NCBI GenBank assembly: GCA_013416795.1
Contig: RQSC01001099.1
Coordinates: 1-21,781, forward strand
From: Prasinococcaceae sp. CCMP 1430
Taxonomy: Eukaryota > Plantae > Prasinodermophyta
Direction of reading: 5' to 3'
Length of the DNA stretch: 21,781 nt
Shown: positions 7,073 through 21,781 of the stretch, one piece after another
Layout of the letters: every line of letters begins with the position of its first letter
Position numbering within the stretch: the first letter of the stretch is position 1
The notes under the pieces: generated by a model
What the model was told of the DNA's origin: nothing
Databases searched by the model: none
The model's input: the letters and a program-made list of their open reading frames with translations, nothing else
Program-made: the position numbers and the translations under genes

Positions 7073-7816
7073 TCAGCCGGTCCCGCCGCACTCGATGAGC
7101 CTCGTGGGCGTGGCGACGAGGTCGACGGGGTGGTCGTGGCCGTCCGCGGGTACGCTCGCAACCACCTGCTCGTCGTACGCGAGCGCGAGCAGTGCGGGCG
7201 GCCGCGCGCCTGCCGCGGCTGCGGCAGCGGTCAGGCGTGCGACGAAGCGGTCGTAGAAGCCCCCACCGCGACCGAGCCGCAGGCCACTGGCATCGAACGC
7301 CAGGCCGGGCATGAGCACCAGGTCGTACGCGTCCGCGTCTGAGCCACCGTTGCCGCTGGGCCCGCCGCGAGGTGCGTTGCGTCGCGCGTTGACGTCCTCG
7401 ATGTCCTCACGCGGCTCTCCGCGCGCATTCAGCAGCGGCGGCTCGAGCAGACCCATCGCTCCCGGCTCGAGGTCGTCCAGCGATTCGATGCGCAGCATCC
7501 GCATGGCGCCGTCAGCGCTGTCCCCAATCACGCGTGGTGCGTAGCACGGCGTGCCATGCGCGAGCGCTGCTCGGATGAGCGGGGCCGTGTCGACTTCGCG
7601 GAGCCGCGCCGTGTCTGCTATGAACACGCACGCCGCGCGTGCACGCGCCCACACTTCAGACTGTCGCGCCCGCTCGCACGCGGCGGCCGCGCCCGCCTCG
7701 AGCTCCGCCTCAGACATGCGGCGCAGGCGCGCGCGAACGTCCGCGCGCATTGCGCGCTTCTCATCCGCGGCCGCATCCCCCCCCGCTGTGGCAGCGGCGC
7801 CCGCGGCCGCGGCCAT
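7073..7816 (-). CDS. MTHFS: 5-formyltetrahydrofolate cyclo-ligase (5,10-methenyl-THF synthetase)
   Basis: EKRAMRADVRARL N-terminal helix, EVDTAPLI, LLEP, DLVLMPGLAFDASGLRLGRGGGFYDRF and ALAYDEQVVASVPADGHDHPVDLVATP. Alternative ATG at 7825. Confidence 0.96.
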   Translation of the reverse strand: MAAAAGAAATAGGDAAADEKRAMRADVRARLRRMSEAELEAGAAAACERARQSEVWARARAACVFIADTARLREVDTAPLIRAALAHGTPCYAPRVIGDSADGAMRMLRIESLDDLEPGAMGLLEPPLLNARGEPREDIEDVNARRNAPRGGPSGNGGSDADAYDLVLMPGLAFDASGLRLGRGGGFYDRFVARLTAAAAAAGARPPALLALAYDEQVVASVPADGHDHPVDLVATPTRLIECGGTG

Positions 7817-7817
7817 C

Positions 7818-8846
7818 GCGCGCATCTTCGGCCTTCACGACGAGTGCCTTCACAGTGTTGGTGATCTCCGCCATCTCTGCTGTCATTCGCACGCGAGTGT
7901 CGTTGTACTGCTCGACGCGTGCGAGCACCTCAGCGAATGTATCCATCTGCGTGGGAAAGTCCGCCTGCGACTCGAGGTCGGTGATGTCAAGCACCGCACA
8001 GATGTCTTGCACGATGTTGCCCGCCACATCCATATCCTCGCAACGCACCGTGACCTCCCCCACCGCAGCGTTCGCCCGGATGGCCAACGCGGAGCCGTCG
8101 CGCAAGCTCACGAAGACCTCGTTGACGTTGCCAGAATCGTCAACCACTCTTGCCGGCGCCAAAGCCCCCTCTTTCTCCGCGCCCGATGCCAAGGAAGTAC
8201 CAATCCAATGCGCAAGCATCGGTATGGCGCTGGGCGACAGTGAGAACGTGACGCCGGCGTTAGGCACGGGCACCTGGCCCGGCGCTGCACGCTTGTACAT
8301 CGCGTACGCGCCCAGGGTCTCCTCAAGCTCGAACACGTGGTACCCCGCCGCGCCGGGCATGGACACAATGACTTTGCCGACGATGGCAACGGGCTGGTCC
8401 ACCTTGGGGCGCAGCTGAACTCGGAACTCGGAGGCCGGCTGGGAGGGCACAGCATAGAGGCTCTCGTCGGTGAAGATGCGCTCGCCAAAAATCAGTGCCC
8501 CAGTGATGACTGCAGGTGGCGTGCAGTTCAGCACGAGGTCGATGGCGCCTGCGCGAACGTTCTGCTCGAGGCGGTGATCAAGGCGCGTTGAGACGGGGAT
8601 GACCGACGATGTGTTGGAGGAGGCACCCTTGCCTACACGCGCGTCCAGCGCCTGCAGCTGGAAGAGCAGCTCGGCGCGAGTCTGGGCCAGCGATTGGATC
8701 CGCTCCTCGTTGGCGTCAGCGTCCATCAACGAGCCGGCGCCATCGCCACCGATGTTGTTCAAGCCTGCATCGTCTGCCACACGCTCGGCGGGCAGGTAGC
8801 CCTTGACCTCACCGTTCACACTGCACACGATCAGCTCGTCCTTGCC
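7818..8846 (-). CDS. BBS2: Bardet-Biedl syndrome 2 protein (BBSome core), internal/C-terminal fragment
   Basis: GKDELIVCSVNGEVKGYLP (end of beta-propeller), GAE/platform region, then RCEDMDVAGNIVQDI...DLESQADFP...LARVEQYNDTRVRMTAEMAEITNTVKALVVKAEDAR. The 5' half is cut by N at 8848. Similarity ends at AEDAR (7818); the frame runs on to a stop at 7761-7763. Confidence 0.9.
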
Positions 8847-9793: not shown

Positions 9794-9940
9794 NNNNNNN
9801 NNNNNNNNNNNNNNNNNNNNNNNNNNNNNNNNNNNNNNNNNNNNNNNNNNNNNNNNNNNNNNNNNNNNNNNNNNNNNNNNNNNNNNNNNNNNNNNNNNNN
9901 NNNNNNNNNNNNNNNNNNNNNNNNNNNNNNNNNNNNNNNN
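9794..9940. other. 147-N assembly gap
   Basis: Run of N; may hide the start codon of the downstream gene. Confidence 0.99.
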
Positions 9941-9941
9941 G

Positions 9942-12900
9942 AGCCCCGCCAAGCGGCCGCGCGTGCGGCCGCCGCGAGGGCAGCCGCAGGGCGAGGCCGC
10001 GGGTGCAGGGGCTGCCGGCGTGCAGGCCGACGGCGCGCCGACCGCCAAGGATCGTGGCTCGGACGAGTCAGATGAGGACGCACGCATGGTGGAGGCAGCC
10101 GAGGGCACCGACGCGCCTGCTGCGCCCGCCGTCCCGGAATTCAGCGATGCGAGGAAGGTAGCGTTGCGCGACCGAATCGCCGAGCTGGACCAGGACCAGA
10201 TCCGCCAGATCTTCGAAATCGTCAAGCGTGCCCACGAGACTGGCGAGGGCGAGGGCGACGAGATTGAGATCGACCTGGACTTTGATGCGCTCGCGCCGGG
10301 GACGCTGCGTGATCTGCAGGAGTATGTGGACGCGCTGCCGTCAGCCGCCGACGATGCGGGCGAGGGCGGCGAGGAAGCGCACCAGGGCGATGCGCCGGGC
10401 GCGGATGGTGCAGACGGAAAGGATGCTCGCAGCAGCGAGGAGCGACGGGCGAAACCGCAGCAAAGGGGCTTGAAGCGCCAACGCGACGAGAATGGCGGCG
10501 GAAGTCCCGGCAGCAGCCGGGGTCATGGCAGCGAGAGCTCCGGCGGGGAGGCGGCGGGGGACGGCGGGGAGGACGAGGAGATCGAGCAACCACGAAAACG
10601 CGATGGCGGTGACCACGGCAGTGGCAGCAGCGATCATTCGGGTTCTGTGCTCTCGATCGAAGAGGAATCTGACGACGAAGACGACGCGATTGCGTCGGCG
10701 CCGAGCGGAAGCGCACCCGACTTGTCACGAGCTGGCGCGCCCGGTAGCCACGCCGTGGACTTGAGCTCGGTGGCGCTGCCCGAGCCGTCGCGGTTGCAGC
10801 GCCAGTTGCCTGGCGCTGCTTGCAAGGACAGCTCGGGAGCCATTGACGGCGAGGTGCAGGCGTGGGCTGCACGCGAAGCAGAGAAACACGCTGCCAGCAG
10901 CGCGCAGAAGCAGAAACCGGCGGCCAAAGCGCCGCCGCCGGCGAAGAAGGCCAAAATGAGCCTGATGAGCGACATCCTGAAAAACATCGGGGGGGAGAAT
11001 GACGCGCAGTTCAAGCCGGCGTTTGAGATGACGCCCGCACCCGTGTGGCAGGGGTTGCTCACCGTGAGTGGCACGCGTTACTCAGCGCGTGCGCACGCCA
11101 CGCTACCGCCCGATGGCTGCGAGTCGGCCGATGAGTGGACCATCAAGAGAAAGGGCATGGACATGCTGCCTCCCAACTGGATCTGTGGAGAGGTCGCGCG
11201 GCGCGAGGACCTGCCTCACCGCTGGACACACACTGGCAACTTCGCCGTGCCACTTGAGGACGTGGCGTTCGTCATCTTCCCTGGGTCACCAGGCGACACG
11301 CCCGCCTACAACGGCCTTCTGAGGCACCTGGAGGTGACGCGCATGCCTTTGCGTATCATGCTCAATTCAGACGTACAGATGCTGGTGCTGCCCAACGTCG
11401 GCCTTCCCAACTGTGGCCAGGATCTGCACAGAGGACCATTCATCTGGGCTGCGATCATGCCCATCGAGGTGCGTGACGAGGGGTCACTCGTGCCAAAGGG
11501 ATCCCGCTCACCCACCCACGCGGCGAGCATTGCGCTCAGCTCGGTCCGTAGCATCCTCAAGCGACGAGGCTCCGTCGACTCCAAGGCGGCGACAGAGAAG
11601 GCCGCGAAGGAGGCTGAGGCGACGGTGCAGGCCGCTGCTGAGGTGATGCGTGCCTCCCGCGAGCAGTCAGGTCACACCAGCGAGAAGGCGGCGACCGCAA
11701 AGAAGGCATCGGCCGATGCCGAGGAGGCCGCGGCAGCTGCGGGTGGCGGCTCGCCCGCAGACAGCGCGTCTCCCGGTGGCGGAAATGCCGGTCAGCAGCA
11801 GGCACTTCCGCCGCTGCCATCGCAGCAGCCAGCACACTTCGGCAGCACCCCCGCTGAGCGTGCGTCGATGGTGGGTGCAGCGCCTTTCAAGGGCTGCAAC
11901 TTTATCTTGCCCGGGTGTGACGTAAGCAAGCCCGAGGTGTCCAGCGTGATCGCCGCGGCCGAGGCAGCCGGCGGCACATATCAGTCTCGCATGGGTCCTG
12001 ACGACCACGACAAGGTGGACGTGGTGGTGATGACCATCAGTTTTCTGCGCGCGCTGCCCGAGAATCGCTGGTTCGACCTAAATCGCCTGCAGCGCCGCCG
12101 CGGTGTTGTCTTCGTCAAGAACGTCGAGTATCTCAAGCTGTGCGTGCGCACGGGGCTGCGGCTCGACCCAACACCGCTGGGTATGGCGCTGTTCCCTCAG
12201 GGCGGCTTCGTGCTGGTTGACAGGCGGCTCTTTACGGCTTCGCCGCGCGCGGCCAGCAAGGTGCTCGAAGCGCTCGCGGCGACGAGCGCCTCGAGCGCGG
12301 CGCGCGAGGGCCTGCGCATGGCAGCGCTGATGCGTGCGCACCGTGACGACGAGGACACGAATCTGGGAGAGCGGCGATCCAGCGGGGAGCGCTGGGTGAT
12401 GAAACTTCCGCAGCAGGACGTCGACTTCCTGCGGCGTGCTGCCAACTCGAGTGCGCCCGGTGCGAAGATGGTGGCCAAGAGTGCGAGGGCAACGCTCGAC
12501 GCCCTCGCCGTCCATCGGCGCCGCGTTCTGATGATCACGCCCGAGGAGGAGTCGAAGAGCAAAAATGCACCCATCCCGCAGATCGTGCGCAACGCCGTCA
12601 AGATCGCCACAATCCTTGCCGAGAACTTCCGTTTCGCCATCCTGGTGACCAACGATCCAGAGTTGAGCGCCGCTGCTCGCCACCACCGTGGCCTGCTGCG
12701 CTGCTCTCTCGACAAGCTACCGGACATGCTGAAGAGCCTCGACAAGGACACTGGCAGCCTTGGCCTGGAGTTCGACTTCCTGTCCGATGAAAAGCCCTCG
12801 GGCAACGGCAGAGCGGCGGGCGAACAGGGGGTCGATGCCAGCGGGGACGGCAGCGGGGACGGCAGCGGGGGCGCAATTGGCAGCACAGGCGATGGTAGCC

Positions 12901-13247
12901 GGGATGACAGTGCCACGCCGCCGCCTGGGACGAGTGCGCGTAAGCGCAAGGTGAGCTTCTCCACTGAGGCTCTGGAGCACTGTGAAGCGACGGACGCCCA
13001 CAAGGCCGAGACATCTCCAGCGAGGCGGTCACCAATGAAGGAGCGGTGGATCGACCCAGAGGAGGCCTCGGCGGCCCCGGGCGCCTCGAGCGCAGCGACC
13101 TCGTTGTCGCTTGGTGCGCCCGAGAAGCCGGCCGCGGGGTCGTCGGTCGCATCGCCGAGTCCTGGCGCCGATGCAGGCGCCTCGGTGGCGGCTGCGAAAG
13201 TCGGTGCAGACGTGAATGATATGTGGGCAGACGAGTTCGGCGACTGA
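9942..13247 (+). CDS. Large nuclear protein: BET-type ET domain + SPOC + BRCT-like DomII + PIN-like domain (TASOR/Chp1-like C-terminal architecture)
   Basis: ET 10131-10328 (RKVALRDRIAELDQDQIRQIFEIVK...DEIEIDLDFDALAPGTLRDLQEYV). SPOC-like 11040-11462 (PVWQGLL...LPPNW...FVIFP...YNGLLRHL...QMLVLP...FIWAAI). BRCT-like DomII ~11883-12156 (PFKGCNFILPG...AGGTY...KVDVVVM). PIN-like ~12189-12731 (LFPQGGFVLVD...RWVMKL...RFAILVTNDPELSAAARHHRGLL). Basic NLS-like patches (KRQR, PAKKAK, RKRK). Start lies in the gap or at ATG 10086. Confidence 0.8.
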   Translation, partial: SPAKRPRVRPPRGQPQGEAAGAGAAGVQADGAPTAKDRGSDESDEDARMVEAAEGTDAPAAPAVPEFSDARKVALRDRIAELDQDQIRQIFEIVKRAHETGEGEGDEIEIDLDFDALAPGTLRDLQEYVDALPSAADDAGEGGEEAHQGDAPGADGADGKDARSSEERRAKPQQRGLKRQRDENGGGSPGSSRGHGSESSGGEAAGDGGEDEEIEQPRKRDGGDHGSGSSDHSGSVLSIEEESDDEDDAIASAPSGSAPDLSRAGAPGSHAVDLSSVALPEPSRLQRQLPGAACKDSSGAIDGEVQAWAAREAEKHAASSAQKQKPAAKAPPPAKKAKMSLMSDILKNIGGENDAQFKPAFEMTPAPVWQGLLTVSGTRYSARAHATLPPDGCESADEWTIKRKGMDMLPPNWICGEVARREDLPHRWTHTGNFAVPLEDVAFVIFPGSPGDTPAYNGLLRHLEVTRMPLRIMLNSDVQMLVLPNVGLPNCGQDLHRGPFIWAAIMPIEVRDEGSLVPKGSRSPTHAASIALSSVRSILKRRGSVDSKAATEKAAKEAEATVQAAAEVMRASREQSGHTSEKAATAKKASADAEEAAAAAGGGSPADSASPGGGNAGQQQALPPLPSQQPAHFGSTPAERASMVGAAPFKGCNFILPGCDVSKPEVSSVIAAAEAAGGTYQSRMGPDDHDKVDVVVMTISFLRALPENRWFDLNRLQRRRGVVFVKNVEYLKLCVRTGLRLDPTPLGMALFPQGGFVLVDRRLFTASPRAASKVLEALAATSASSAAREGLRMAALMRAHRDDEDTNLGERRSSGERWVMKLPQQDVDFLRRAANSSAPGAKMVAKSARATLDALAVHRRRVLMITPEEESKSKNAPIPQIVRNAVKIATILAENFRFAILVTNDPELSAAARHHRGLLRCSLDKLPDMLKSLDKDTGSLGLEFDFLSDEKPSGNGRAAGEQGVDASGDGSGDGSGGAIGSTGDGSRDDSATPPPGTSARKRKVSFSTEALEHCEATDAHKAETSPARRSPMKERWIDPEEASAAPGASSAATSLSLGAPEKPAAGSSVASPSPGADAGASVAAAKVGADVNDMWADEFGD

Positions 13248-19233: not shown

Positions 19234-20154
19234 TCAGCCCATCGCGCTGCCGGCCGCTTTATCCCCCTGCGCATGGCACGCGTCTGAGGCATCAAAGAAT
19301 ATGTCGCCGTCAGCGTCGGGCGCCGGCGTGCGCTTGAGCGCGTCCTCGGCGCGCATGCGCGCCGCGTAGGCGGCATGATCGTAGGAGTCGTCAATGCGCT
19401 TGCCACTGGGACACAGCCCCAGCGCGGCGAGCTGCTCAGGCGTGTACAGCTGCTGCAGGAGCTCCGAACCCTTATCGCCCGCCTTCTGGGAGGAGCTCTG
19501 CTTGGGGAAGCAGAACACGATCTTCCCCCTCGTGCGTGCTTCAATGAACGGCGAGATGATGCGCCAGAAAGCGTAGAATATGCGTGGCGGATCCCACAGC
19601 ACTGCTTCGCCAAGCGACTCCGGGTAGCAGTCCTGCAGCACGCGGAGCGTCTCGCGGCTCGTCTTTATCGGCGGGGCATTGCGCAGGCTGTAGCCCTTGA
19701 AGTCAATGATCCAGCGGAACCTTGAGACCGCCTCGGGATAGCTGCGGCCAGCTGCGGTCTCCTCCCTCTCCAGGGCCGTTCTCGCGGATTCGAGGGTATA
19801 AACGAGGTTGCGGATGTTGCCCTCGTGGTCCTTTGTGTTCTCGTTGCGCGGTCGCATGAGGATGGTGGGCAGGCCGTCGGCAGCACGGAAGTCCGCGCGA
19901 TACATCTTGCCCGTCTTCATCTCGTGCTCCACGTCCTCCCAGACGAGAGTTTCGGGCCTCGCGCGCGCGCGCCACTTGAGCGCCCCCCGCAGCAGTGCAT
20001 CGGCCTTGCTCATGTCGTGGCCGCGCGCGCGCAGGAAGCGCGCCGCCGTCCCCACGCAGCCGTCGGCGTCGAGGCCCACCCGCTCGCACAGTGACCGCGC
20101 GAGCGCAGCCTCCTCCGGCGAGCCACGCTCCACCTTGCGCTTTTGCGCACCCAT
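19234..20154 (-). CDS. CRAL-TRIO/Sec14-like lipid-transfer protein (Pdr16/Sfh3-like)
   Basis: RFLRARGHDMSKADALLRGALKWR (CRAL-TRIO N), EMKTGKMY, ILMRPRNEN, LVYTLESA, WIIDFKGYS, LQDCYPESLG, PPRIFYAFWRIISPFIEARTRGKIVF. Confidence 0.95.
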   Translation of the reverse strand: MGAQKRKVERGSPEEAALARSLCERVGLDADGCVGTAARFLRARGHDMSKADALLRGALKWRARARPETLVWEDVEHEMKTGKMYRADFRAADGLPTILMRPRNENTKDHEGNIRNLVYTLESARTALEREETAAGRSYPEAVSRFRWIIDFKGYSLRNAPPIKTSRETLRVLQDCYPESLGEAVLWDPPRIFYAFWRIISPFIEARTRGKIVFCFPKQSSSQKAGDKGSELLQQLYTPEQLAALGLCPSGKRIDDSYDHAAYAARMRAEDALKRTPAPDADGDIFFDASDACHAQGDKAAGSAMG

Positions 20155-21140
20155 GACGGCCGCGCCTTCCCGCTCGCCCCCCCCGTTCGGGCACGCAGGC
20201 GCACGCTCAAGGCGCGACCGCAGCGGCGCCCAACGCCCACCACCTGCGCCTGCACCTGCACCAGCGCCAGCGCCGCAGCCGCCAGCGCATTGGAGATGCC
20301 CGGGATACCCAACGCCGCAATGGTGTCGGCTGGCGTCATGCGCACCTTTGCGTCATCCAGCAGGCCGAGGATGCGATTCACGCGCTGCTCACCCATGCGC
20401 GGCAGGGCCTCAATGGCCTCGCGGTGGGCGGCCAGGCGAAAGAAGTCGGGTGGCGATGACACGATGCCGGCCTCCACCATTAGCTCCACCGTATTCTCGC
20501 CGATGCCTGCCTTCAGTGCCCGGGCGAAGTGCTGCAGCGCGCGGCCAGTGCGCAAGGGGCACTGCACGTTGCGGCACCACATGGTGAGCACGCTCTGCCC
20601 ATCGCTTTCGTCCATCTCACCGTCTTCCTCGCCCCTGTCCTCGACGCTGACATCGCCGCCAGCGGCTGCGACAACCCGCTCCCACTCGGGTAGAACAGGG
20701 CCGTGTTGCTCGACGTGCAGGACGCTGCCGCAGCCAGGGCACTTGGAGGGCGCGACGAAGCCGTCCGCCTGCTCGCCCCGAAGCCCTTCGACCGGTCCAA
20801 GTACGCGCGGGATAACATCGCCGGCGCGCTCAATCACGACCGTGTCGCCCTCGCGCACGCCCATGCGCAGAGCGTGGCCGACGTTGTGCAGGGTCGTGCG
20901 CGAGATGAGCGCGCCGCCGATCTCTACCGGGCGCACGCGCGCAACGGGCACCACGTGGCCCGTGCGCCCCACCGCCACGCTCAGGTTCTCGAGCACGGAC
21001 GTGGCCTGCCGCGCGGGCGGCTTGAGCGCCACCGCCCATCGCGGGTCGGAAGACGTCGATCCCATCAACCGCTGCGTCTCGGCGCTGTCCATCTTCAGCA
21101 CGGCGCCGTCCGTGTCGAAGTCGCACTCGTCGCGCGCGGC
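20010..21140 (-). CDS. ligA: NAD+-dependent (bacterial LigA-type) DNA ligase, partial
   Basis: FDTDGAVLK (motif IV), PRWAVALK (motif V), VGRTGHVVPVA, TTLHN, GDTVVIERAGDVIP (OB fold, motif VI), C4 zinc finger CPGC...CRNVQC, HhH motifs GIGENTV, LPRMGEQRV and ALGIPGI. The N-terminal adenylation half is cut by N at 21142. Similarity ends near 20260; the frame continues to 20010. Confidence 0.93.
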   Translation of the reverse strand, partial: AARDECDFDTDGAVLKMDSAETQRLMGSTSSDPRWAVALKPPARQATSVLENLSVAVGRTGHVVPVARVRPVEIGGALISRTTLHNVGHALRMGVREGDTVVIERAGDVIPRVLGPVEGLRGEQADGFVAPSKCPGCGSVLHVEQHGPVLPEWERVVAAAGGDVSVEDRGEEDGEMDESDGQSVLTMWCRNVQCPLRTGRALQHFARALKAGIGENTVELMVEAGIVSSPPDFFRLAAHREAIEALPRMGEQRVNRILGLLDDAKVRMTPADTIAALGIPGISNALAAAALALVQVQAQVVGVGRRCGRALSVRLRARTGGASGKARPSWVRKSARWSVARRRRLRSRGHCASGWASTPTAAWGRRRASCARAATT

Positions 21141-21141
21141 G

Positions 21142-21142
21142 N
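21142..21142. other. Single-N assembly gap separating divergent ligA and PDH E2
   Basis: Both flanking genes lose their 5' ends at this N. Confidence 0.9.
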
Positions 21143-21143
21143 C

Positions 21144-21781
21144 GCGGCGCGGCGCGCGAGGCGCGCGCCGCCCGTCGCGGCAATCAGGGAGGTCCCAATG
21201 CCTGCGCTGTCGTCGACCATGACGGGTACGGGCGCAGCGGTGACGTGGGCGCGCGCGGGGGCGCGGTAGCGGATGCAGGAGCGCGCGCCAGCGATGACGG
21301 CGCGCGCGCTCTGCTGCGGGACGCGCCTCTTTCGCGCGCGCTCGGGCCACGCTAACTCCTGCAATGCGCCCCCGCGCGTCCTTCGACTGGCTCTCGTGCG
21401 CCCCGCTCACGCGCTGCTAACCCCCCGCCTCCTTCGGACCTCGTGATGGCCGCCGCGATCGCGCGCGTGTTTGCTCGCGCGGTGCTCGCAGAGGGCAAGA
21501 TCGTGAGCTGGCTCGTGGAGGAGGGCGACGAGATGAGCAAGGGCGACGCCATCGTGGTCGTCGAGTCGGACAAGGCTGACATGGACGTCGAGGTGTTCTA
21601 CGACGGCATCCTAGCGGCTGTTCTGGTCGATGAGGGCGAGACCGCGCCCGTGGGCGCGCCCATCGGCGTGCTGGCTGACACTGAGGCCGAGATCGAGGAG
21701 GCCAAGGCCAAGTACGCCGGCGGCGCGCCAGCGGCCGCCGCTCCCGCTGCCCCCGCTGCCGCCGAGCCGGCGCCCGCGCCT
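21144..21781 (+). CDS. LTA2: Plastid pyruvate dehydrogenase E2 (dihydrolipoyllysine acetyltransferase), partial; exons <21144-21225 and 21492->21781
   Basis: The spliced product reads AIREVPMPALSSTMT-E-GKIVSWLVEEGDEMSKGDAIVVVESDKADMDVEVFYDGILA, a plastid-type lipoyl domain with lipoyl-Lys at 21572-21574, then an Ala/Pro linker. An Arg/Ala-rich transit-peptide remnant lies upstream. Confidence 0.95.
21226..21491 (+). other. Spliceosomal intron (PDH E2)
   Basis: GTACGG donor, GCTAAC branch motif at ~21416-21421, CGCAG acceptor; splicing restores the conserved TMTEGKIV exactly. Confidence 0.92.

Follow-up and report, generated by a model that had tools for sequence, protein, structure and literature searches.

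The SPOC, DomII and PIN domains, in that order, are the defining shared module of TASOR and Chp1 (PMC7532188; PMC7619638). In the searchable literature, TASOR-like proteins are discussed within Metazoa only (PMC10578480), and we found no mention there of DomII-PIN relatives in algae or Amoebozoa. A 21,781-nucleotide stretch of DNA from the alga Prasinococcaceae sp. CCMP 1430, referred to here as the window, contains an open reading frame that was originally predicted to encode the same module behind an N-terminal ET domain. The locus raises two questions: is the encoded protein related to TASOR and Chp1, and what might such a protein do?

The features of the locus are listed below. Amino acid positions refer to the readable reading frame.

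9794..9941, + strand: assembly gap (N run 9794-9940), concealing the start codon and approximately the first 45 codons
9942..13247, + strand: readable coding sequence, 1101 codons plus stop, without interruption
10143..10331, + strand: ET (extra-terminal, BET-type) peptide-docking domain, amino acids 68-130 (Pfam PF17035)
11034..11468, + strand: SPOC-type beta-barrel, amino acids 365-509 (weak Pfam and fold matches)
11469..11873, + strand: low-complexity Ala/Ser/Gly-rich linker, amino acids 510-644 (no Pfam match)
11874..12197, + strand: BRCT-fold alpha/beta domain, equivalent to Chp1/TASOR DomII, amino acids 645-752 (predicted model)
12198..12746, + strand: PIN-fold domain, amino acids 753-935 (predicted model)
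12942..12959, + strand: RVxF-type PP1-docking motif KRKVSF in a disordered tail, amino acids 1001-1006 (consensus match)

A single open frame runs from the stop codon (13245-13247) back to the gap, so the predicted frame at 9942-13247 holds. Its predicted start does not. Position 9942 is the first base past a gap of 147 Ns that directly precedes it and, in a near-identical TARA scaffold (P0066/L006; identical downstream of the gap), an ATG lies 135 nt before the base matching 9942. The predicted full-length protein is about 1146 amino acids long. A split gene was rejected: the frame is continuous, a homologue (P0002; 66% identical) is collinear with the window protein end to end, and complete Ostreococcus transcripts span SPOC to PIN. 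The motif blocks were found exactly where the original prediction had placed them (LFPQGGF at 12189, RWVMKL at 12390, VLMITPE at 12525, FRFAILV at 12627 and RGLL at 12687). They are kept in 14 diverse homologues, whose algal and amoebozoan-type subfamilies align with an hhalign probability of 99.8% (E 1e-28), and are thus not a chance pattern. The window protein carries basic clusters of nuclear type (KRPR, KRQR and KKAK). An NCBIfam scan of the window protein gave no match. GC content is ~68%. This value, the near-identical TARA ocean scaffolds, and Ostreococcus and Bathycoccus as the closest relatives after these point to a marine green alga resembling Micromonas.

We modelled the BRCT-like and PIN domains together. 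The model is confident (pLDDT 83.4, pTM 0.80) and confirms both folds: an alpha/beta block of BRCT type, at model residues 10-117, is followed by PIN. As had been anticipated for this region, the best structural match among 48,161 PDB representatives is the DomII-PIN unit of Chp1 (PDB 3TIX), to residues 664-958 of which the two domains align jointly (Foldseek E 1.6e-5 over 308 columns). Among the matches listed, Chp1 alone covers both domains; single-domain matches to the SMG6 PIN and to BRCT domains score nearly as high, and superposing both domains on Chp1 gives a large rmsd (7.7 A). BRCA1-type phosphopeptide-binding BRCTs use Ser or Thr before the conserved Gly, in the phosphate pocket after strand 1. 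Here, that residue is Pro, Leu or Ile across the family (L-P-G, L-L-G or L-I-G). A phosphopeptide-binding BRCT was rejected because the pocket Ser/Thr is absent from the family.

A sequence link to TASOR had also been proposed for the DomII-PIN region, and profile comparison bears this out only indirectly. The window protein scored 13 bits (E 0.089) against Pfam PF24630 PIN_TASOR and did not reach the cut-off of 27. Conversely, a Thecamoeba relative (P0007), matched by the algal profile with E 4e-10, scored 28.3 bits and so passed the curated cut-off. A Paradermamoeba relative (P0012) scored 26.8 bits. Matches to TASOR_alpha-beta were weak and were seen in two relatives, with E 0.002 (P0012) and E 0.011. 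For 4 of the 14 members, PIN_TASOR ranks first among PIN families and, among Pfam PIN and alpha/beta families, members best matched PIN_TASOR and TASOR_alpha-beta only. TASOR and Chp1 themselves were not retrieved. An exhaustive search of 1.84 billion proteins with the algal profile gave 15 matches, each to the C-terminal half, with neither protein among them. Profiles A2 (BRCT-PIN) and A4 matched no Chp1, TASOR or PIN entry among PDB sequences. Word-indexed searches recovered P0001 and P0002 alone with the window protein, P0007 alone with P0007 residues 600-1000, and Picocystis-type proteins alone, with no TASOR or Chp1, using the 14-sequence profile A6. Homology to TASOR and Chp1 is thus transitive and structural, because the window protein misses PIN_TASOR and its amoebozoan relative passes.

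Relatives were found in Ostreococcus, Bathycoccus, Picocystis, Thecamoeba and Paradermamoeba. The BRCT-PIN family thus ranges over Mamiellophyceae and Picocystis (Chlorophyta) as well as Amoebozoa. From profiles and the predicted structure, we show that the BRCT-PIN pair represents a conserved eukaryotic family, to which DomII-PIN of TASOR and of Chp1 are the nearest described relatives. The C-terminal half is distantly related to the TASOR/Chp1 core module, which suggests that this module long predates animals and fungi. The proposal that it lies deep in eukaryote evolution gains support from the chlorophyte and amoebozoan members.

The N-terminal module differs between members, being either PHD fingers (Picocystis, Thecamoeba) or ET. 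In the window protein, the ET domain matched Pfam BET PF17035 (E 4.6e-10; 39.9 bits, cut-off 24.5). A PDB sequence search with the window protein returned ET matches alone, to BRD4, BRD3 and BRD2, which were weak (E ~0.02-0.06). The protein gave no Pfam match to a chromodomain. For pseudo-PARP (DUF3715) and DomII families, there was no Pfam match at E up to 1 across the whole window protein, and no DomI-like domain was seen. An ET domain thus stands where Chp1 has a chromodomain and TASOR a pseudo-PARP, as originally proposed. Assignment as a BET protein was rejected, since the window protein has no Pfam match to a bromodomain; with BRD2/3/4 and the plant GTEs it has the ET module alone in common.

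The SPOC-like block is less clear by sequence. In isolation, it matched Pfam SPOC_AIPP2 with E 3.9e-4, under the cut-off, and among Pfam families it matched SPOC families alone. The model of this block has low confidence (pLDDT 49.5); every top fold match was a SPOC or Ku-type barrel. We therefore retain the SPOC assignment as a sub-threshold one. The domain lies nearer to the PHF3 and AIPP2 types, and AIPP2 SPOC is its best Pfam match. The linker that follows, of ~135 amino acids, shows little conservation when the window protein is compared with P0002 and is presumed to be disordered. ET, SPOC, the BRCT-like alpha/beta domain and PIN thus follow one another on a single polypeptide, in the order foreseen.

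The algal protein is not an orthologue of TASOR or Chp1, because it has neither the pseudo-PARP of the former nor the chromodomain of the latter. With human TASOR and TASOR2 (HUSH and HUSH2) it shares SPOC, a long linker (disordered in TASOR), DomII and PIN. It differs from TASOR in having no DomI and a SPOC of PHF3/AIPP2 type. The C-terminal half of S. pombe Chp1, a RITS component that acts with Tas3 and Ago1, is the structural match of the algal BRCT-PIN unit; sequence similarity is undetectable, and the algal protein adds an RVxF tail and the linker that separates SPOC from the BRCT-like domain. DomII and PIN of TASOR are dispensable for reporter silencing (PMC7532188), and homology there therefore says little about function. 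[quoted passage not shown] The combination of a chromatin-reader module with a SPOC-like domain is alike, and delivery of a phosphatase to Pol II by AIPP2 parallels the candidate algal RVxF motif. However, AIPP2 has no BRCT-PIN, recruits CPL2 rather than PP1, and uses a PHD histone reader rather than ET.

We consider it probable that the gene encodes a nuclear scaffold of ~1146 amino acids (ET-SPOC-linker-BRCT-PIN-RVxF tail), related to TASOR and Chp1, which would serve as an RNAi-independent chromatin or polymerase platform that docks PP1. Such a protein would be an assembly platform on chromatin or transcribing polymerase. It would be recruited by its variable N-terminal module: ET here, PHD in Picocystis and Thecamoeba, the chromodomain in Chp1 and the pseudo-PARP in TASOR. 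Nascent RNA or partner proteins may then bind to SPOC and the BRCT-PIN module. Within the green-algal branch, protein phosphatase 1 would dock on the tail motif, and local dephosphorylation of targets such as elongation factors or the polymerase CTD could lead to repression or termination. By analogy with HUSH and RITS, we infer that this could amount to co-transcriptional silencing, the role originally proposed. The mode would be RNAi-independent. Dicer and Argonaute are reportedly missing from both O. tauri and O. lucimarinus (PMC4014436); since a homologue is present in Ostreococcus, an RNAi-guided, RITS-like mode appears unlikely.

The RVxF consensus, located within disordered sequence, is [K/R]-x(0,1)-[V/I/L]-x-[F/W] (PMC10731240). 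One motif of this type is present per tail in 8 of 8 green-algal-type homologues, the tails being otherwise unconserved. All eight real tails fit the looser published consensus and five fit the stricter form with two basic residues, which shuffled tails fit in 0.05-3% of trials. A hydrophobic pair, 4-5 residues downstream of RVxF, is also conserved in green-algal-type tails. RVxF motifs are short and degenerate. At the sequence level, a candidate PP1-docking motif in every green-algal-type tail is a new observation. Could the protein be chiefly a PP1 regulatory subunit, PNUTS-like, that controls transcription termination or elongation and is unconnected with heterochromatin or heritable silencing? 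The motif and hydrophobic pair in all green-algal-type tails would fit such a role. Moreover, PNUTS-type regulators provide an established means of targeting PP1 to Pol II (PMC10731240), and the SPOC domains of PHF3, SHARP and RBM15 read phosphorylated CTD (PMC10111866). However, amoebozoan-type members have no RVxF motif, so PP1 docking is not the core function of the family. We regard this reading as possible, if somewhat unlikely.

A second alternative is that the PIN domain may be catalytically active, like the SMG6 endonuclease. This would make the protein an RNase, tethered to chromatin or polymerase and cutting nascent or unwanted transcripts, and not a passive scaffold. By secondary-structure order, rather than residue-level superposition, the PIN acids map to D760 (after strand 1), E868-870 (after strand 3) and D905 (after strand 4). 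D905 belongs to a T-N-D motif of the kind usual in PIN domains, and D826/D828 follow strand 2 in the two Micromonas-type proteins. The strand-1 Asp is retained in all green-algal-type members, which also favours activity. Conversely, it is lost in the amoebozoan type, several members lack the strand-4 acid, and the Glu after strand 3 is the sole acid conserved family-wide. SMG6/EST1A and Nmd4 differ in that their acidic active site is fully conserved, they act in cytoplasmic NMD, and they have no BRCT or SPOC. To our knowledge, no nuclease activity has been demonstrated for the PIN domains of Chp1 or TASOR. We judge an active nuclease unlikely.

Convergent shuffling of unrelated SPOC, BRCT and PIN domains, with a function elsewhere such as BRCT DNA-damage signalling, would be in keeping with the widespread occurrence of these nuclear folds, the sub-threshold PIN_TASOR score of the window protein and its PHF3/AIPP2-like SPOC, but is quite improbable given that BRCT-PIN is one conserved unit across 14 homologues, that relatives match the two TASOR-specific Pfam families in the order expected (one relative past the curated cut-off), that Chp1 is the sole two-domain match among those listed from the 48,161-chain search, and that the Ser/Thr of phosphopeptide-binding BRCTs is missing.

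The favoured reading, a TASOR/Chp1-related scaffold, bears on the origin of HUSH and on the relation between HUSH and RITS, for which the basis so far has been a single protein each from animals and fission yeast. A conserved family in picoplanktonic green algae and Amoebozoa would place the module in early eukaryotes and reveal an exchangeable recruiting head: chromodomain, pseudo-PARP, PHD or ET. We tentatively propose, as a doubtful extension, that a SPOC-BRCT-PIN scaffold was present in the ancestor of Amorphea and Archaeplastida, that TASOR and Chp1 are its opisthokont descendants, and that algae use it for RNAi-free tethering of PP1, and possibly of a still-active PIN nuclease, to chromatin or Pol II via ET or PHD. 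If true, small-RNA-independent co-transcriptional silencing would be ancestral. The conserved candidate PP1-docking motif would provide a concrete, testable biochemical hypothesis. Ostreococcus tauri is transformable, and small, genetically tractable genomes would help to ask what the still-enigmatic DomII-PIN module does.

The gene is read as a single plus-strand open frame, bounded by an N run and a stop codon at 13245-13247, with its motif blocks in place. Each motif string named in the original prediction was found exactly where it had been placed. The features needed to read the locus are as follows.

9794-9940: N run (assembly gap)
7761-8828 (-): ORF matching the GAE, platform and hairpin domains of BBS2, a ciliary BBSome component
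20010-21410 (-): ORF matching the OB-fold and part of the adenylation domain of NAD-dependent DNA ligase

Given the N run, position 9942 is merely the first readable base and not the gene start. Downstream of the gap, the TARA Oceans scaffold L006 is identical to the window. It encodes a protein of 1146 aa (P0066), the ATG of which lies 135 nt upstream of the counterpart of base 9942. The start codon is thus hidden within the gap, and the 45 N-terminal residues were supplied by this near-identical scaffold. On the 5' side of the gap, the window aligns poorly with L006. The contig carrying homologue P0001 (L005:1-210, compared with window positions ~9942-10025) departs from the window sequence immediately 5' of a GCAG|GCC junction. 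Either a chimeric assembly or an alternative 5' exon, with its splice acceptor at the junction, may account for this.

The GC content of the window is ~62-74% outside the block holding the gap. Neighbouring ORFs are ordinary eukaryotic ones: a mitochondrial carrier, BBS2 pieces, a SPOUT-type RNA methyltransferase, a RING protein and a CRAL-TRIO protein. The BBS2 ORF is consistent with a flagellate alga. Homologue P0002 (997 aa), from marine metagenome scaffolds, is 66% identical and collinear. As in the window, P0002 is followed after a few kb by a Methyltrn_RNA_3 gene, with additional genes between them on the P0002 scaffolds.

The family members are listed below, with the N-terminal module where one was recognised and the position of an RVxF motif in the tail after PIN.

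Window protein: BET-type ET domain at ORF aa 68-130; RVxF KRKVSF at 12942-12959 (+)
P0002: RVxF at aa 949
P0003, Ostreococcus mediterraneus cluster: RVxF at aa 865
P0006, Bathycoccus prasinos cluster: RVxF at aa 1375
P0013, Picocystis salinarum cluster: N-terminal PHD finger; RVxF at aa 760
P0009: RVxF at aa 659
P0010: RVxF at aa 644
P0005: RVxF at aa 297
Thecamoeba member: several PHD-type fingers by Pfam
Paradermamoeba member

The BET-type ET domain originally predicted for the window protein was recovered by Pfam (E 4.6e-10, above the curated cut-off). Within the family this domain was detected in the two Micromonas-type proteins only. P0009 and P0010 represent two GC-rich metagenomic clades and start with a Cys-x2-Cys knuckle. 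Every full-length member carries a SPOC-like block of the W-x-G type upstream. When isolated, the block of the window protein matched SPOC families alone (SPOC_AIPP2, E 3.9e-4), and eight homologous blocks gave values as low as 1.5e-6 for SPOC_AIPP2 and 0.01 for SPOC, all of these scores being below or near threshold. We assign the window block as a SPOC domain with moderate confidence. Since the N-termini vary (ET, PHD, Cys-x2-Cys) and SPOC and BRCT-PIN are kept, the head module is exchangeable. The database entry for P0005 (NCBI MEM7767740.1) assigns it to a 'Pseudomonadota bacterium' MAG, though the family is clearly eukaryotic; the label probably reflects eukaryotic contamination of the MAG bin.

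TASOR and Chp1 share a SPOC domain and a C-terminal DomII/PIN pair (PMC7532188; PMC7619638). The corresponding region of the window protein (aa 636-950), modelled from a 14-sequence alignment, gave a confident two-part structure (pLDDT 83.4, pTM 0.80). In a Foldseek search of the PDB, the best match was the Chp1-Tas3 core (3TIX, E 1.6e-5, 308 columns), the sole match covering both domains among those listed. The rmsd of the two-domain superposition was high (7.7 A). Hence, the relative domain orientation or a helical insert differs from Chp1.

An exhaustive profile search with the Micromonas-type alignment against 1.84 billion representatives retrieved 15 proteins, all via the C-terminal half. 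Neither this search nor PDB sequence searches retrieved TASOR or Chp1 themselves. One protein retrieved was P0007 of Thecamoeba quadrilineata (E 4e-10). The likeness to TASOR had been proposed subject to a profile check: the window protein itself gave only E 0.089 against Pfam PIN_TASOR, whereas P0007 passed (28.3 bits, cut-off 27). Paradermamoeba P0012 scored 26.8 bits against PIN_TASOR (cut-off 27) and matched TASOR_alpha-beta (E 0.002); P0014 matched TASOR_alpha-beta (E 0.011). Aligned by hhalign, the Mamiellales and amoebozoan-type subfamilies matched across both domains (probability 99.8%, E 1e-28). Taken together, the score of the window protein, that of P0007 and the 3TIX fold match make kinship with the TASOR module transitive and structural, not direct.

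The window protein has no pseudo-PARP, chromodomain or bromodomain and so is not a TASOR orthologue, a Chp1 orthologue or a BET protein, respectively. It is a variant SPOC-DomII-PIN scaffold with an ET head, an explicit BRCT-fold DomII and a putative PP1-docking tail. We found no published description of such a scaffold in these lineages in the literature searched; domain databases may already list such proteins under TASOR Pfam families.

Pocket residues of PIN and BRCT were assigned from strand order in the model. Acidic residues follow PIN strand 1 (D760), strand 3 (E868-870) and strand 4 (D905, within a T-N-D motif); in the two Micromonas-type proteins, D826/D828 come after strand 2. All green-algal-type members retain the strand-1 Asp, which the amoebozoan type has lost, and the strand-4 acid is missing from several family members. 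Hence, PIN catalysis would be possible in the algal branch and not a family-wide constraint. R883, K887 and R897 are invariant across the family; an F-P-x-G turn before PIN strand 1, W818 and E869 are nearly so. Phosphopeptide-binding BRCTs carry Ser or Thr before a conserved Gly. In this family the residue is Pro, Leu or Ile, and a canonical phospho-pocket is unlikely.

Green-algal-type tails are otherwise unconserved, and each contains exactly one RVxF match. Each of the eight conforms to the published consensus, [K/R]-x(0,1)-[V/I/L]-x-[F/W], where x preceding F/W is not proline (PMC10731240). A strict form with two basic residues occurs in 5 of the 8 real tails and in 0.05-3% of shuffled-tail trials. 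Most tails have a hydrophobic pair 4-5 positions downstream. No RVxF motif was found in amoebozoan-type proteins. We regard the conserved algal RVxF match, a new observation, as a predicted PP1-docking motif. A second short tail motif, S-P-M-K-E-R-W-I (13026-13061), is one that the window protein has in common with P0002 alone.

The architecture and deep homology expected of a TASOR/Chp1-like silencing scaffold thus stand, at the level of fold and transitive sequence kinship; silencing as the biological output would be by analogy only. In TASOR, DomII/PIN is dispensable for reporter repression, and the Chp1 PIN is required at subtelomeres only (PMC7532188). An RNAi-guided, RITS-like mode is unlikely because the family is present in Ostreococcus (O. 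mediterraneus), and Dicer and Argonaute are reported absent from O. tauri and O. lucimarinus (PMC4014436). The window protein contains basic clusters (KRPR, KRQR, KKAK) and may be a nuclear scaffold. Plant AIPP2/PAIPP2 are reader-SPOC proteins bringing the phosphatase CPL2 to Pol II (PMC7718874), and RVxF-based PP1 targeting to Pol II is established for PNUTS (PMC10731240). In our proposal, the scaffold would be recruited via ET (PHD in relatives) and via SPOC, the BRCT-PIN module would hold partners or RNA and, in green algae, the scaffold would dock PP1.
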